Below are positions 1 to 59,930 of a DNA stretch of 64,000 nucleotides, one piece after another. The stretch is taken from positions 11,842,001 through 11,906,000 of the forward strand of contig OZ059894.1 of assembly GCA_964057225.1 (NCBI GenBank), in the 5' to 3' direction. Source of the stretch: Auanema rhodensis (lineage: Eukaryota; Animalia; Nematoda). The notes beneath the pieces were generated by a model. It was given only the letters and a program-made list of their open reading frames with translations, was not told where the DNA came from and did not search any database. Made by a program: the position numbers and the translations under genes. Each line of letters starts with the position of its first letter. The stretch's first letter is position 1.

Positions 1-810
1 TAAAAAGTCCAATCAAGAGAGAAATTTTTTCAACACATAGTTGTTTTTTTTTTAAATATCATTGTTTTTCCTCATAACTCGGTTTAAACTCGTTCTAACC
101 CGTTGAAATACGTCTAGAAAGTCTTTATAACATGCATATGTATGATAGAACTTCATATTTATTGTAATAGAAAATTTTATTTTCAGACGTCTTGGTTAAC
201 AATGATATGTTTTACCCCCTTATAATTTTTATCATAATGTTCCTTATACGGAACGCTCAATGAAACTTGCTTCCAGAAAAATTTCTTTCTATTTTTTCTT
301 CATATGTACGTAGATACTATAGAGAACTATGATAGAAAACTTTAACATTCACGAAATCATCATTTCTCATTACGCTACGGAGGTTTAAAAAGCTGTGTTT
401 TACCTTATAATAGACCGGAAAACCCTTGTGTTAAAACTGGACCGTTTTTACACATATAAAAATGTCCCGTATTCGGGACCCTAATGTAACTTTTGATTCC
501 CTATATTTTTTTTCATGAAATTTACAATCTACTGTAGAAAGAAGAATTATTTTTATAAAAACTGTAAATTTTTGAAAAATGAAAACAAAACGAAAACAAA
601 AACAACTTTTTTTTGAACATTTTCTCACACAAGGGTCCCCCCTTACCTACTTTTTTTCTCATTACTCGTTTCAACCTCATCCGATCACTCTGCAAACATG
701 TTTAATCGTTCTAACTTGTTGAAATACGTCTTAAAAGTCTAAACAACATGCATATGCATAATAGAAACCACCCGAATAGGCCCCCACGCACTAAACGAGA
801 TATATACATT

Positions 811-1040
811 ACCAGTATAGTAATAGAACACATATTGAAGATTAATTCGATAAGAACAATTTATTGACGTAGAGAATGTTTGTTCCGAAAAACTACAATA
901 TTAAACTATAAAAGTAACAAAAGCGTAGAGGCAGCAAAGACATGAATAAACATAAATGTAAATACAGAATTACCAGGTAGTACATAAGTATGACAAAAAA
1001 TTATAAGAAAGCCATGAAAATAGAAGGTTTGTGAACAAAT
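811..1040 (-). mobile_element. Decayed relic of the 788-bp element family with a U2 nt 39-79 fragment (present in every standard unit)
   Basis: 811-820 matches the element's right end (10/10), 821-861 matches U2 nt 39-79 (36/41) and 862-905 matches the element's left end (38/44). Patchy similarity continues to about 1040. Confidence 0.8.
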
Positions 1041-1176
1041 GAGAGGTACATCTTTGATCGTATAGTCATTTCTAAACCGTTCGTATGCTGCAGCATCGTC
1101 ATAAGCGTCACTCAAGTTGAATTTCCATGTGTACTACACGATTTTCATTCTTATTGTTACATTCTTTCCCTGAGGG

Positions 1177-1362
1177 AATGGGCCGTTCCCGCCAGCAGTG
1201 CAAGAGCGGGTCGACCCGTGAGGTGGAGCTAGCAAGCCAGCATCTACCTCAAGTCTCAAAAATCGGTTAACCTTATTGTGAACCAATGGAACACATATCG
1301 AAGGTTAATTCGATAAGAACGATTACTACACTTTGATCTTAGCCAAAAGGCCGAGAAGCGAT
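1177..1362 (-). ncRNA. U2: U2 spliceosomal snRNA (unit 1)
   Basis: Minus strand reads AUCGCUUCUCGGCCUUUUGGCUAAGAUCAAAGUGUAGUA. It has stem IIa UAUCGAA-UUAACC-UUCGAUA with downstream complement GGUUAA, Sm site AUUUUUG, stem III and stem IV with a UUGCAC loop. About 186 nt; 3' end approximate. Confidence 0.97.
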
Positions 1363-18649: not shown

Positions 18650-19045
18650 ATGGTTTATTGAATAACTAATGTTATGAAACAATAAATAACCAATAAAAAA
18701 GAGCCCAGAATCGGGGAGACGGTATTACCAGTACAACTTAAAACAGCAAGTGATTAAAAAGTACAAAATAAAACACATTACCAACAGAGGCTAAAACGAC
18801 TCAAGAGTCGGGGGAGTGGGTTAAAAAAAGTAATGAATAACAAAAAAAATGAATAATAAAGCAGACCAGTGAAAAGTAAATATCAAGTGCCGCTATGATC
18901 AAACAATTTGAGTGCCTACGGCAATGGTGTTAAAAATAAACAACAAAATACATGTACCAATGAAGGTCAGAAAGAGAGAAAGAAAAAAGACAAAAATAAG
19001 TAATACAAAAAGTAAAAAATATATTACAATCAAATCACAAACAAG

Positions 19046-19840
19046 TCAATGGATAATTTCTTCTTCATACTGCCTTACACCAGAAACATGTTCCACGTAG
19101 ATATTCCTGGCCCACTTGATGGTATCGGCGACGACGAGCTTCTCCATTAGCCGGTTGTAGTGGCTGCTGATCTTGAGTGATCGGAGGGCTTGTACGTTGA
19201 GCGGGTCCATAGTTCCAAGCATTCCTACGACATACGCTTCTACACTAGTCTTATAACCAAGACATTGGTATTGGCTGGCTATGTCAGCATATTTCCTCTC
19301 CTTTATCATACGCGCGGCTATCATGGCTTGTCGGCGGTTTTCATAGCTCACTGTAACATCAACGATACTACAGTGTTTTGCGTCATGATCGACCACTACT
19401 ATGTCAGGTCGGAGTGTACTATTAATGCCAGGAAGAGGCTGGTTAGTGTAAACTTCTCCGTTTTTAGGCTCTGGCAGGGCTTTGATAAGACGGTCCACGA
19501 TGTTGTTGTGGCGGAGTTGGATTGCTCTCGTGTGAAAGTGGCAGTGTCCAAGAACATGTGCAGCAGTTTCGTTGGGGTAACTACACCTGCGGCACTGTTT
19601 GTTTCCTTCTCCGTGTCTTCTACAGCCATTGAGCTGGAGAGTATTAAGTCGAGCCTTGTGGATGAATCGCCAATCAGCAAACCGTATGAAATCTCCCTTC
19701 GCCATAAAGTGATTGGACGCTTTGTTGAGCATTGTGACATCAAAGACTTTCCCTTGATCCGGTTTTTGAAGAAGGATCCGAAGGTCTTTCAGCCATAATG
19801 CACGTCGCAGGCTTCTGTGGCATAGTGAAGGTGTTAACAG
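19046..19840 (-). CDS. C-terminal fragment of the retrotransposon polyprotein: zinc knuckle + restriction-like endonuclease (truncated)
   Basis: KPDQGK...RFADWRFIHKARLN, CRRCSYPNETAAHVLGHC (CCHC), RHN, RPDIV, IVDVT, K-x2-KY. The frame is uninterrupted. The first ~30 aa of the 294-aa track ORF are read-through of the inverted segment and not native. Confidence 0.9.
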   Translation of the reverse strand: MLTPSLCHRSLRRALWLKDLRILLQKPDQGKVFDVTMLNKASNHFMAKGDFIRFADWRFIHKARLNTLQLNGCRRHGEGNKQCRRCSYPNETAAHVLGHCHFHTRAIQLRHNNIVDRLIKALPEPKNGEVYTNQPLPGINSTLRPDIVVVDHDAKHCSIVDVTVSYENRRQAMIAARMIKERKYADIASQYQCLGYKTSVEAYVVGMLGTMDPLNVQALRSLKISSHYNRLMEKLVVADTIKWARNIYVEHVSGVRQYEEEIIH

Positions 19841-19852
19841 TTGGTTCAGCAC

Positions 19853-20150
19853 TATCCTCCAAACGCCAGTGCTGAACCAATCTACCTGCCAACCAACTAC
19901 GGCGGACTTGGTCTCTCTCGACTCCAACACCTGTCAGACGTCTGTGAAGTCACTCATGCCTACCAACTTTTGAAGTCATCTGATCTTGTAGTAGCTGATA
20001 TTGCGCATCAAGACTCAATAAAAGTAGCATCAAAAAGGATTAAACGTCAAGCCAGTAACGATGAGACAGCTGCATATTACAACGGTTCCGTTGATGGCAT
20101 TTTCGACACCGAAACATCTGATGTTTCCTCCATCTGGACTAGAGTAAGAG
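19853..20150 (+). CDS. Inverted internal fragment of the same polyprotein (post-RT thumb/linker region)
   Basis: ASAEPIYLPTNYGGLGL...AYQLLKSSD...SIWTRVR. The YLP-x3-GGLG motif is typical of the end of non-LTR RT domains and normally lies just upstream of the KPDQGK region. Confidence 0.82.
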
Positions 20151-22033: not shown

Positions 22034-23048
22034 AATGGGCCGTTCCCGCCAGCAGTGCAAGAGCGGGTCGACCCGTGAGGTGGAGCTAGCAAGCCAGCAT
22101 CTACCTCAAGTCTCAAAAATCGGTTAACCTTATTGTGAACCAATGGAACACATATCGAAGGTTAATTCGATAAGAACGATTTATTGAAGTAGATAATGTT
22201 TGTCCCGGAGGACTACAATATTAAAATAATTACTGAAGCCCGAAGGCAGCGAGAAATAGTAAGGATACTACCTGCACTGAGTGCGTCGTATCATAAAAAA
22301 AGAGATAGCTAATGGGCAAGTTGAAGAGCTTGAAATTAACAATGACGTCACTAGAAGTAAAGTTTTCTATCTGCAGCTGCGGGTAAAGAGGGTCAGCGTA
22401 AGCAGAATTCAATTCTACCAACAATTAGTGGGAACATTGAGAGAACAGATGAAGGAGGAAATTGTAACTTCAAGTAAAATAGATTATATCTTCAGCTGCG
22501 GGTAAAGAGAGTCAGCTTTGTACAGATTACTAGTTTACATAAGAAGTGGTAACATTTCAAAAAAGGAGCACAACATAAAAAACGAGACTACGGACTATGA
22601 GGTAAATGTTATCATTGTCTGGATCGATGATTCGGCATTTGATTGCAGCTGCGGATTGAGTGGATCAGCTTGCATGGCGTCCGCATTCGACATCAGGGAA
22701 AATGATGAGTTTCTTGAGGTCCGGCTCGGCGGGCTGTTATGTCCTATTCCCTGTTGATGGTGTTGTTGTCCTTGAGCTTGTTCTTCTTCCCAGAAAAAAA
22801 AAAACTGTGAAGCTGAAGAGTCCTATTAAACGTCTTTAAACGCAAGATTAATAAGAAGCTACTACAGCTAACACAGGACCGCCTCAAGGCCTGGTAGATC
22901 AACCAGTGTTGCTTCAATCACCAAGTATTGCGGCCTGGGCCCTTGGATCAATTCACAACACCAGTATAGCAATGGAACACATATCGAAGGTTAATTCGAT
23001 AAGAACGATTACTACACTTTGATCTTAGCCAAAAGGCCGAGAAGCGAT
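22034..23048 (-). pseudogene. U2: U2 gene interrupted by the 788-bp element
   Basis: U2 nt 1-79 at 23048-22970, then the insert, then U2 nt 39 to end at 22181-22034. Confidence 0.92.
22182..22969 (-). mobile_element. 788-bp non-autonomous U2-targeting element (SINE/SIDE-like) between 41-bp direct repeats
   Basis: Absent from standard units. Flanked by exact repeats caatggaacacatatcgaaggttaattcgataagaacgatt at 22141-22181 and 22970-23010. No long ORF. The minus-strand 3' end ...TTCAATAA(A) joins U2 at nt 39. Confidence 0.88.
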
Positions 23049-40833: not shown

Positions 40834-40942
40834 AGCTTACGACACCCGGGATTCTCCGATCCAAGTACTAACCGGGCCCAACGTTGCTTGACTTGCCAGA
40901 TCGGACGGGATGGCGTACTTTCAACGTGGTATGGTCGTAAGC
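40834..40942 (-). pseudogene. 5S rRNA copy with a 10-bp internal deletion
   Basis: gggattctccgat instead of gggattcccaagccgtctccgat at ~40854. Confidence 0.88.
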
Positions 40943-51083: not shown

Positions 51084-51479
51084 ATGGTTTATTGAATAAC
51101 TAATGTTATGAAACAATAAATAACCAATAAAAAAGAGCCCAGAATCGGGGAGACGGTATTACCAGTACAACTTAAAACAGCAAGTGATTAAAAAGTACAA
51201 AATAAAACACATTACCAACAGAGGCTAAAACGACTCAAGAGTCGGGGGAGTGGGTTAAAAAAAGTAATGAATAACAAAAAAAATGAATAATAAAGCAGAC
51301 CAGTGAAAAGTAAATATCAAGTGCCGCTATGATCAAACAATTTGAGTGCCTACGGCAATGGTGTTAAAAATAAACAACAAAATACATGTACCAATGAAGG
51401 TCAGAAAGAGAGAAAGAAAAAAGACAAAAATAAGTAATACAAAAAGTAAAAAATATATTACAATCAAATCACAAACAAG

Positions 51480-52274
51480 TCAATGGATAATTTCTTCTTC
51501 ATACTGCCTTACACCAGAAACATGTTCCACGTAGATATTCCTGGCCCACTTGATGGTATCGGCGACGACGAGCTTCTCCATTAGCCGGTTGTAGTGGCTG
51601 CTGATCTTGAGTGATCGGAGGGCTTGTACGTTGAGCGGGTCCATAGTTCCAAGCATTCCTACGACATACGCTTCTACACTAGTCTTATAACCAAGACATT
51701 GGTATTGGCTGGCTATGTCAGCATATTTCCTCTCCTTTATCATACGCGCGGCTATCATGGCTTGTCGGCGGTTTTCATAGCTCACTGTAACATCAACGAT
51801 ACTACAGTGTTTTGCGTCATGATCGACCACTACTATGTCAGGTCGGAGTGTACTATTAATGCCAGGAAGAGGCTGGTTAGTGTAAACTTCTCCGTTTTTA
51901 GGCTCTGGCAGGGCTTTGATAAGACGGTCCACGATGTTGTTGTGGCGGAGTTGGATTGCTCTCGTGTGAAAGTGGCAGTGTCCAAGAACATGTGCAGCAG
52001 TTTCGTTGGGGTAACTACACCTGCGGCACTGTTTGTTTCCTTCTCCGTGTCTTCTACAGCCATTGAGCTGGAGAGTATTAAGTCGAGCCTTGTGGATGAA
52101 TCGCCAATCAGCAAACCGTATGAAATCTCCCTTCGCCATAAAGTGATTGGACGCTTTGTTGAGCATTGTGACATCAAAGACTTTCCCTTGATCCGGTTTT
52201 TGAAGAAGGATCCGAAGGTCTTTCAGCCATAATGCACGTCGCAGGCTTCTGTGGCATAGTGAAGGTGTTAACAG
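51480..52274 (-). CDS. C-terminal CCHC + RLE fragment, second copy
   Basis: Identical translation to 19046-19840. Confidence 0.9.
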   Translation of the reverse strand: MLTPSLCHRSLRRALWLKDLRILLQKPDQGKVFDVTMLNKASNHFMAKGDFIRFADWRFIHKARLNTLQLNGCRRHGEGNKQCRRCSYPNETAAHVLGHCHFHTRAIQLRHNNIVDRLIKALPEPKNGEVYTNQPLPGINSTLRPDIVVVDHDAKHCSIVDVTVSYENRRQAMIAARMIKERKYADIASQYQCLGYKTSVEAYVVGMLGTMDPLNVQALRSLKISSHYNRLMEKLVVADTIKWARNIYVEHVSGVRQYEEEIIH

Positions 52275-52286
52275 TTGGTTCAGCAC

Positions 52287-52584
52287 TATCCTCCAAACGC
52301 CAGTGCTGAACCAATCTACCTGCCAACCAACTACGGCGGACTTGGTCTCTCTCGACTCCAACACCTGTCAGACGTCTGTGAAGTCACTCATGCCTACCAA
52401 CTTTTGAAGTCATCTGATCTTGTAGTAGCTGATATTGCGCATCAAGACTCAATAAAAGTAGCATCAAAAAGGATTAAACGTCAAGCCAGTAACGATGAGA
52501 CAGCTGCATATTACAACGGTTCCGTTGATGGCATTTTCGACACCGAAACATCTGATGTTTCCTCCATCTGGACTAGAGTAAGAG
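52287..52584 (+). CDS. Inverted thumb/linker fragment, second copy
   Basis: Identical translation to 19853-20150. Confidence 0.82.
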
Positions 52585-52617
52585 TATTTCTTCAAGATAT
52601 TTCAAATAAAATATAAA

Positions 52618-53288: not shown

Positions 53289-53416
53289 ACAGTAAAAAGT
53301 CCAATCAAGAGAGAAATTTTTTCAACACATAGTTGTTTTTTTTTAAATATCATTGTTTTTCCTCATAACTCGGTTTAAACTCGTTCTAACCCGTTGAAAT
53401 ACGTCTAGAAAGTCTT

Positions 53417-53958
53417 TATAACATGCATATGTATGATAGAACTTCATATTTATTGTAATAGAAAATTTTATTTTCAGACGTCTTGGTTAACAATGATATG
53501 TTTTACCCCCTTATAATTTTTATCATAATGTTCCTTATACGGAACGCTCAATGAAACTTGCTTCCAGAAAAATTTCTTTCTATTTTTTCTTCATATGTAC
53601 GTAGATACTATAGAGAACTATGATAGAAAACTTTAACATTCACGAAATCATCATTTCTCATTACGCTACGGAGGTTTAAAAAGCTGTGTTTTACCTTATA
53701 CCTCCGTAGCGTAATGAGAAATGATGATTTCGTGAATGTTAAAGTTTTCTATCATAGTTCTCTATAGTATCTACGTACATATGAAGAAAAAATAGAAAGA
53801 AATTTTTCTGGAAGCAAGTTTCATTGAGCGTTCCGTATAAGGAACATTATGATAAAAATTATAAGGGGGTAAAACATATCATTGTTAACCAAGACGTCTG
53901 AAAATAAAATTTTCTATTACAATAAATATGAAGTTCTATCATACATATGCATGTTATA
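53417..53958. repeat. 259-bp inverted repeat (arms 53417-53675 and 53700-53958, 24-nt spacer)
   Basis: 53701 onward (cctccgtagcgtaatgag...) is the reverse complement of the preceding spacer. The sequence then resumes at tagagcacatatc, just before 5S-A. Confidence 0.95.
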
Positions 53959-54036
53959 GAGCACATATCAATCAACAACTTTTTCTAGTTATCAAAGCTT
54001 TTTTATTTCTTCAAGATATTTCAAATAAAATATAAA

Positions 54037-54155
54037 AGCTTACGACACCCGGGATTCCCAAGCCGTCTCCGATCCAAGTACTAACCGGGCCCAACGTTGC
54101 TTGACTTGCCAGATCGGACGGGATGGCGTACTTTCAACGTGGTATGGTCGTAAGC
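54037..54155 (-). rRNA. 5S rRNA
   Basis: Same as 1805-1923. Confidence 0.97.
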
Positions 54156-54396
54156 AATGTTATATTCTTCATTATCAGTTATATCACTCTAAATCTTGTT
54201 GTTAATAGTTAGGACCACAAAGAAAACAACAGGAACAGTAACAAATGAAATGCCCAAACTTTACAGTGTTCGAGTTATTTACAGTATCTAAGACTACCTC
54301 TGTCGTGTTATTAGAGCAAACATTCGATTAACAACAACTTTTTTTTAGTTATCAAAGCTTTTTTATTTCTTCAAAAAATTTCAAATAAAATATAAA

Positions 54397-54515
54397 AGCT
54401 TACGACACCCGGGATTCCCAAGCCGTCTCCGATCCAAGTACTAACCGGGCCCAACGTTGCTTGACTTGCCAGATCGGACGGGATGGCGTACTTTCAACGT
54501 GGTATGGTCGTAAGC
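54397..54515 (-). rRNA. 5S rRNA
   Basis: Same as 1805-1923. Confidence 0.97.
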
Positions 54516-54657
54516 AATGTCATATTCTTCATTATCAGTTATATCACTCTAAATCTTGTTGTTAATAGATACGACCACAAAGAAAACAACAGGAACAGTA
54601 ACAATAACAAAAAAAATTTTTTTTTCACCTATGTGTCTAAAGGTTAGCCATGTATCC

Positions 54658-54707
<50 letters not shown>

Positions 54708-55886
54708 ACAGTAAAAAGTCCAATCAAGAGAGAAATTTTTTCAACACATAGTTGTTTTTTTTTAAATATCATTGTTTTTCCTCATAACTCGGTTTAAACT
54801 CGTTCTAACCCGTTGAAATACGTCTAGAAAGTCTTTATAACATGCATATGTATGATAGAACTTCATATTTATTGTAATAGAAAATTTTATTTTCAGACGT
54901 CTTGGTTAACAATGATATGTTTTACCCCCTTATAATTTTTATCATAATGTTCCTTATACGGAACGCTCAATGAAACTTGCTTCCAGAAAAATTTCTTTCT
55001 ATTTTTTCTTCATATGTACGTAGATACTATAGAGAACTATGATAGAAAACTTTAACATTCACGAAATCATCATTTCTCATTACGCTACGGAGGTTTAAAA
55101 AGCTGTGTTTTACCTTATAATAGACCGGAAAACCCTTGTGTTAAAACTGGACCGTTTTTACACATATAAAAATGTCCCGTATTCGGGACCCTAATGTAAC
55201 TTTTGATTCCCTATATTTTTTTTCATGAAATTTACAATCTACTGTAGAAAGAAGAATTATTTTTATAAAAACTGTAAATTTTTGAAAAATGAAAACAAAA
55301 CGAAAACAAAAACAACTTTTTTTTGAACATTTTCTCACACAAGGGTCCCCCCTTACCTACTTTTTTTCTCATTACTCGTTTCAACCTCATCCGATCACTC
55401 TGCAAACATGTTTAATCGTTCTAACTTGTTGAAATACGTCTTAAAAGTCTAAACAACATGCATATGCATAATAGAAACCACCCGAATAGGCTCCCACGCA
55501 CTAAACGAGATATATACATTACCAGTATAGTAATAGAACACATATTGAAGATTAATTCGATAAAAACAATTTATTGACGTAGAGAATGTTTGTTCCGAAA
55601 AACTACAATATTAAACTATAAAAGTAACAAAAGCGTAGAGGCAGCAAAGACATGAATAAACATAAATGTAAATACAGAATTACCAGGTAGTACATAAGTA
55701 TGACAAAAAATTATAAGAAAGCCATGAAAATAGAAGGTTTGTGAACAAATGAGAGGTACATCTTTGATCGTATAGTCATTTCTAAACCGTTCGTATGCTG
55801 CAGCATCGTCATAAGCGTCACTCAAGTTGAATTTCCATGTGTACTACACGATTTTCATTCTTATTGTTACATTCTTTCCCTGAGGG

Positions 55887-59821: not shown

Positions 59822-59930
59822 AGCTTACGACACCCGGGATTCTCCGATCCAAGTACTAACCGGGCCCAACGTTGCTTGACTTGCCAGATCGGACGGGATG
59901 GCGTACTTTCAACGTGGTATGGTCGTAAGC
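59822..59930 (-). pseudogene. 5S rRNA copy with the same 10-bp internal deletion
   Basis: gggattctccgat at ~59842. Confidence 0.88.

Follow-up and report, generated by a model that had tools for sequence, protein, structure and literature searches.

The window analysed here, which is the whole 64-kb stretch G000:C1:11,842,001-11,906,000 of a 181-Mb eukaryotic assembly, was found to consist of approximately 25 tandem units of about 2.48 kb each. Rfam placed three genes in each array unit, a U2 snRNA gene and a pair of 5S rRNA genes, and all three lay on the minus strand. The same units ran from approximately C1:10.91 Mb to beyond 12.27 Mb, giving an array of more than 1.4 Mb, and the spacers of the units were approximately 100% identical to one another. 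The array sample used below comprised 164 kb with 59 units, namely the window and 100 kb beyond it, and lies in the interior of the array. In window coordinates, the U2 gene next to the stretch under study was as follows.

1173-1362, minus strand: intact U2 snRNA gene (Rfam RF00004, 148 bits, full length)
1284-1324, minus strand: genuine U2 nt 39-79, with the landing site of the elements between 1324 (nt 39) and 1325 (nt 38)

One partial unit of 1.4 kb (window 53293-54711) contained neither a U2 gene nor the scar described below, and the 5S copies at 40834-40942 and 59822-59930 each had an internal deletion of approximately 10 nt. A 69-bp spacer segment was found to be duplicated just upstream of the scar (window 82-150 and 700-766, 84% identity). 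Additionally, the array was broken by a BEL/Pao-type LTR retroelement at L047:1-9156 (G000:C1:12080001-12089156), which contained a 1361-aa ORF with Pao peptidase, RT and integrase domains and a second ORF of 973 aa with a phlebovirus G2-like fusion glycoprotein domain.

Some U2 genes of the array were occupied by elements that share a single site, between U2 nt 38 and nt 39. The short non-coding elements at this site are referred to here as riders, and the longer element, which encodes a reverse transcriptase (RT), is referred to as B. The following copies lie in the window.

22182-22969, minus strand: reference copy of the 788-bp rider E, non-coding, in the same sense as U2
22141-22181, minus strand: U2 nt 39-79 after the 3' end of E, continuous with U2 nt 80-190
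22970-23010, minus strand: second copy of U2 nt 39-79, before E, part of the U2(1-79) head (pseudo-duplication)
18651-20150, minus strand: copy of B inserted at this U2 site, truncated at its 5' end and inverted in part; 446 bp of the target are deleted, and the tail carries CCHC and the restriction-like endonuclease

Rider E contained no ORF longer than 79 aa, and a search of Rfam at E-values up to 1 revealed no known RNA family or HDV-like ribozyme in the rider. The genome search identified at least 29 copies of E at 99-100% identity, all of which were on C1 within the array. Further families had the same ends and different or diverged interiors, namely E2 (864 bp), E3 (742 bp) and E4 (783 bp), so that the riders form at least four families with lengths of approximately 740-865 bp. 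We also observed 12 consecutive units that each carried an identical 788-bp rider (G000:C1:11944360-11980104, L001-L012) at spacings of approximately 3.31 or 2.95 kb, which indicates that much of the rider copy number is owed to the amplification of units that were already occupied rather than to new jumps.

The autonomous element B (3745 bp) used the same U2 site as the riders, and more than 70 copies or fragments of it were present in the array. Its ORF of 1092 aa showed a Pfam match to RVT_1 (5e-28) and a weak match to zf-RVT, and the best solved relatives of the B protein were R2 proteins, with an E-value of approximately 1e-67. The C-terminus contained a CCHC motif and a PD..D/ExK-like restriction-like endonuclease (RPD...D...K), the endonuclease motif being judged by eye in the translation. 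B, E, E2, E3 and E4 were all inserted in the same sense as U2, and the 3' ends of all five adjoined U2 nt 39. Complete copies were preceded by a U2 head, which covered nt 1-79 for the riders and nt 1-95 for B, and the flanking U2 repeat was 41 bp for the riders and 57 bp for B. In total, 116 occupied U2 nt 39 junctions were found.

Two identical truncated copies of B were observed at 18651-20150 and 51085-52585, 32.4 kb apart, with the same inverted segment (B 1577-1274) and the same 446-bp target deletion; such a pair suggests that the array contains a higher-order duplication. A second restriction-like-endonuclease tail, 60% identical to B and with an open frame of 274 aa, was located at G000:C1:10962226-10962996. 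This fragment may represent a second autonomous family, which could be the true partner of the riders.

These elements resemble Utopia, a group of non-LTR retrotransposons that are specific for U2 snRNA genes and encode a restriction-like endonuclease, and in which the flanking U2 sequence begins at nt 39 (Kojima & Jurka 2015, PMC4640811, section 6). In particular, B and the riders share with Utopia the 3' junction at U2 nt 39 and the home in a tandem U2 array, and B has a single ORF with an RT, a C-terminal zinc finger and a restriction-like endonuclease, as Utopia does. In contrast to Utopia, for which no target duplication in arthropods and one of 20 bp in reptiles were described (PMC4640811), complete copies of B had a flanking repeat of 57 bp here, and those of the riders one of 41 bp. 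Judged by its site and domain layout, B would be an R2-like, Utopia-type non-LTR retrotransposon, and the riders would be its non-coding passengers. Such passengers are reminiscent of R2 SIDEs, which are short internally deleted non-autonomous derivatives of R2 (Eickbush & Eickbush 2012, PMC3414825), in that short non-coding elements sit at the target site of an autonomous element. Unlike R2 SIDEs, the riders showed no sequence similarity to B that was detectable by BLAST, so that an origin by internal deletion of B is not supported.

The stretch under study lies in the spacer, 264 bp downstream of the 3' end of the intact U2 gene at 1173-1362 and in the same orientation. The original prediction was that every standard unit carries here, at 811-905, the relic of a tail-to-head junction of the 788-bp element joined by a 41-bp piece of U2. 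Its counts (10/10 for the tail, 36/41 for the U2 piece and 38/44 for the head) were reproduced exactly. We found that 811-908 could be aligned without gaps to 10 nt of the tail of the 788-bp element, U2 nt 79-39 and 47 nt of the element head, with 86 of the 98 positions identical. The local score of this match was 74, compared with a shuffle mean of 11.2 (sd 1.4); in this check against an element-41bp-element dimer, the 811-908 core thus stood out clearly, with z = 43 and 0 of 300 shuffles as high. For the 10/10 tail at its fixed position, hand arithmetic based on composition gave a chance probability of approximately 1e-6. The scar has the following parts.

811-820, minus strand: scar part 1, tail match, all 10 nt shared with the tails of E, E3 and E4
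821-861, minus strand: scar part 2, decayed U2 nt 39-79, matching the genuine piece at 1284-1324 in 36 of 41 nt
862-935, minus strand: scar part 3, putative sense 3' terminus of the younger rider, solid at 862-908 and weak at 909-935

Positions 811-820 probably correspond to the first 10 nt (the sense 5' start) of the older rider, which is the one downstream in the array, read here as the reverse complement 'accagtatag'. The left boundary of the scar was sharp, at 811, and its U2 piece was faintly matched by the Rfam U2 model at 815-858 (model positions 41-84). The boundaries of the three parts (10, 41 and 47 nt) fell on the same bases as in the eight live rider-tailed junctions described below.

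The extent of the scar was examined by pairwise local, collinear semi-global and restricted local alignments and by an nhmmer profile of the four rider families. The profile matched 862-935 with an E-value of 2e-9 and a 5-nt insertion; its extension of the head to 935 had low posterior support, and its envelope reached 955. Two weaker matches had been proposed further downstream; 'aggcagc' lay within the reach of the profile to 935, and 'gtatgacaaaaaa' lay outside it and did not. The relic had also been drawn as far as 1040, which was not borne out: when 909-1040 and 909-1172 were compared with collinear E, E2, E3 and E4, neither was better than dinucleotide shuffles (p = 0.15-0.9). On the left, no similarity to the element body was found at 560-810, and in both directions the flanks, beyond 811 and beyond approximately 935, matched the bodies of the elements no better than shuffles, so that the flanking matches failed the comparison with shuffled controls that the core had passed. 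No significant further element-derived piece was found within the array unit, and a search of the spacer revealed no other U2 remnant. The alignments support an extent of 811-908, perhaps to 935 (approximately 98-125 bp), and by the same comparisons the scar is best described as a fragment and not a preserved dimer.

The stacked insertion proposed as the origin of this junction predicts a structure that should be seen among live elements, and pattern searches of the genome identified it. Exact junctions of an element tail, a U2 piece and an element head were found at 19 of the 116 occupied nt 39 junctions. Eight had the form rider tail, 41 bp and next head, and 11 had the form B tail, 57 bp and next head. 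The length of the U2 piece was set by the element next in the sense direction, so that a rider was preceded by 41 bp and B by 57 bp. Different families were joined in 10 of the 19 junctions. The search for intact tandem dimers, which had been suggested as a check, was therefore successful; for example, L027 had the order E-41-E2-41-B, and a single U2 gene at L058 (L058:265-3929; G000:C1:11633400-11637600) carried B-57-E2-41-E2-41-E2-41-E2. Tandem insertion as such is known from Utopia, as Utopia-1_NVit shows it occasionally (PMC4640811).

The 10 junctions between families support the reading as a stacked insertion, and a circular form of the element, which had been offered as an alternative, is unnecessary since chromosomal stacks with the same junction exist. 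On the circular account, a circle of one element and one U2 piece, excised between the 41-bp repeats, would have been re-integrated in the spacer. Such a one-copy circle would have the permuted order of tail, 41 bp and head that the scar shows. However, a monomer circle cannot give the heterotypic junctions that are common among the live stacks, the spacer contained no full permuted copy, and the elements are of the TPRT type; R2-like TPRT-type non-LTR retroelements are not known to form a circular intermediate. We consider this account very improbable.

A junction of the same kind could also arise if two occupied U2 genes crossed over unequally, either at their 41-bp U2 pieces or at their elements. 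In the L058 stack, the four E2 copies carried T, C, T and C at position 317. This alternation is the signature of a duplicated dimer and indicates that the four-copy stack came from duplication of a dimer and that unequal crossing-over, too, enlarges stacks. The 12 E-bearing units in a row likewise show that the dynamics of the array multiply occupied units. Against crossing-over as the source of the junction, 41 bp of homology is very short compared with a 2.5-kb unit, and the junctions between families, which include B in both orders, are simply explained by landing at a restored nt 38/39 site. Crossing-over is possible and is not negligible here, although we regard it as unlikely; it and a second insertion lead to identical products and are inseparable in the case of the scar.

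The origin of the 41-bp and 57-bp repeats was addressed by one further copy of B. This 5'-truncated copy of 1421 bp joined U2 nt 38 with 3 extra nt and had neither a 41-bp nor a 57-bp repeat.

L034:2440-2560 (G000:C1:10964574-10968365): junction of the truncated B copy, with no U2 duplication

This single truncated copy suggests that what looks like a 41-bp duplication was brought in as a U2 leader on the full-length element RNA and was not produced by a staggered cut. R9 of bdelloid rotifers has a 126-bp target duplication, which is ascribed to staggered cleavage. The elements here are similar to R9 in that the target repeat next to a site-specific restriction-like-endonuclease element is very long; in contrast to R9, the truncated copy of B without the repeat argues for an RNA-borne leader. 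In R2, upstream 28S sequence stays on the RNA once the ribozyme has cut it, and the carried piece is at most 36 nt, comes only from upstream of the site and gives no duplication (Eickbush et al. 2013, PMC3774820). As in R2, target sequence at the 5' end of the RNA would lead to uniform, precise 5' junctions through annealing of the cDNA, as we propose here. Unlike the R2 piece, the head passes beyond the landing site (nt 1-79 or 1-95), rebuilds the site and would permit stacking, and, unlike in R2, no ribozyme was detected in the rider.

Based on these comparisons, the following course of events may be proposed. Insertion would proceed from an RNA begun at the U2 start site, the top strand would be cut near the nick, and the end of the cDNA would anneal to the target. 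Complete copies would thereby bring their own U2 head, so that the nt 38/39 landing site is restored ahead of each resident. A newcomer would then land at nt 38/39 in the head of the resident, or repeated U2 pieces would cross over unequally, and the product would be the 3' end of the younger element, U2 39-79 from the head of the older copy and the 5' start of the older element. Positions 811-908 would represent such a junction from an early E/E3-type family, which would have been trimmed to approximately 100-125 bp by deletions or illegitimate recombination and ended up 264 bp downstream of the functional U2 gene. Concerted evolution would then have spread the fragment into every unit. On one possible route into the spacer, the 3' flank of an intact U2 gene would have recombined illegitimately with the younger element in a stacked gene, and a deletion would then have removed the older element from its base 11 on. 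Another possible route is templated repair; both routes are compatible with the flanks, which do not discriminate between them. The order of these events was inferred from units that all come from the interior of this array.

With respect to the parent of the scar, the comparison among families was informative. The prediction named the 788-bp element, and that part which assigned the relic to a rider junction stood, whereas E itself did not appear to be the parent. The two non-transition differences between the scar and E (868 A>C and 874 T>G) were found to be the states of the sister family E3, which argues against E as the parent. The scar agreed with E and not with E3 at 900 and 902, and its tail was devoid of the extra 11 nt of E2. 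By these positions, the parent is best placed in the E/E3/E4 group, as a family (E/E3-type) that was early or has died out. No live family with a scar-type head was found, as none of the 34 E-type heads at genuine U2 junctions carried scar-specific bases.

The opposite polarity, with the riders assembled from an ancestral spacer stretch, is hardly credible. Nothing beyond the shared sequence itself favours it. The middle 41 bp is a degraded segment of the conserved U2 gene with all five changes directed away from U2, which contradicts this order; together with the lack of scar-like bases in the live heads, it indicates that the scar was derived from the elements. Moreover, four diverged rider families and B all use the nt 39 junction, and an element derived from the spacer would need a circular permutation.

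We then examined the substitutions in the scar. It had been noted that nine of the 11 differences in 811-905 were G>A or C>T, and our recount agreed. All nine scar-specific changes in this interval were G:C>A:T transitions, and they affected 9 of 34 G/C positions compared with none of the 61 A/T positions (Fisher p = 4e-5). The U2 piece leaves no doubt about the ancestral base, and all five of its changes were C>T or G>A away from U2. The four changes in the head could partly be features of an extinct family. Among recent array variants, 9 of 28 were of the G:C>A:T type, which differs from the scar (Fisher p = 4e-4), and the fixed differences between the duplicated spacer segments comprised 19 transitions and 13 transversions. 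By eye, the nine changes were interleaved as C>T and G>A and occurred in CpA, CpG, CpC and CpT contexts, and no RIP-like or single-strand editing signature and no strand or context clusters were evident in these nine positions. It is conceivable that the nine changes reflect a burst of cytosine deamination or repeat-directed hypermutation of retroelement DNA in a nematode-like genome, or that the scar is a transcribed small-RNA template that polices the riders, although we find this proposal, in either form, improbable.

The prediction that the scar is present in every standard unit held for nearly all of the units compared. It was found in 24 of the 25 window units, the exception being the 1.4-kb partial unit without U2, and in 56 of the 59 units of the 164-kb sampled array, where 53 copies were identical and three had a single change. 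The diagnostic scar junction occurred approximately 439 times genome-wide, and among the matches listed (100 of 439) all were on C1. This near-invariance, together with the polarity from U2 to scar, agrees with the claim of an old relic that has swept through the whole array.

Near-invariance of this kind, in approximately 439 units, could also mean that the scar is kept by a function, either as a decoy for the element endonuclease or as a small-RNA template directed against the riders, and its location downstream of a strongly transcribed gene and in the same orientation would fit such a role. The decoy role that had been suggested was contradicted by the insertions themselves. Genome-wide, we found no B head and no E-type head behind the U2 piece of the scar, that is, 0 insertions in approximately 439 scars, which is in sharp contrast to the 116 at genuine U2 nt 39. 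The scar is not used as a landing site and is not a working decoy. Furthermore, the rest of the spacer was equally uniform, at approximately 100%, which indicates that the invariance of the scar results from homogenisation and not from selection, and a quarter of the G/C positions of the scar were lost. Maintenance by function is consequently quite improbable. The scar is probably neutral, and no sign of present-day activity was found.

Taken together, the scar is very probably a decayed junction of stacked insertion that was homogenised through the array. Several observations weigh against this reading. Only 10 nt of the older element are left and the body of neither element is recognisable in the flanks, so that at least two further rearrangements that left no other trace must be assumed; the spacer holds no other U2 remnant; and the pattern of G:C>A:T changes alone is unlike the other substitutions of the array, which suggests that simple neutral decay may be an incomplete account.

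As a stacked-insertion junction, the scar is a by-product of a U2-headed Utopia with non-coding riders and involves no new mechanism, since tandem insertion of Utopia and RNA-borne target sequence in R2 are already known. The searched text of PMC4640811 mentions no non-autonomous partners of Utopia and does not describe a junction fossil fixed in a spacer. What is new is the instance, namely a junction fossil fixed across an snRNA/5S array through stacked site-specific insertion, decay and concerted evolution. The scar is a real, modest historical relic. It shows that riders were stacking in U2 genes before the last homogenisation of the present array from a single founder unit, an array of more than 1.4 Mb and approximately 440 or more units, and that the rider lineage is older than the split between the live E and E3 families. 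In addition, the scar provides a built-in negative control for target recognition: it differs from the genuine site by five changes, has no U2 sequence beyond nt 79 and has never been struck.
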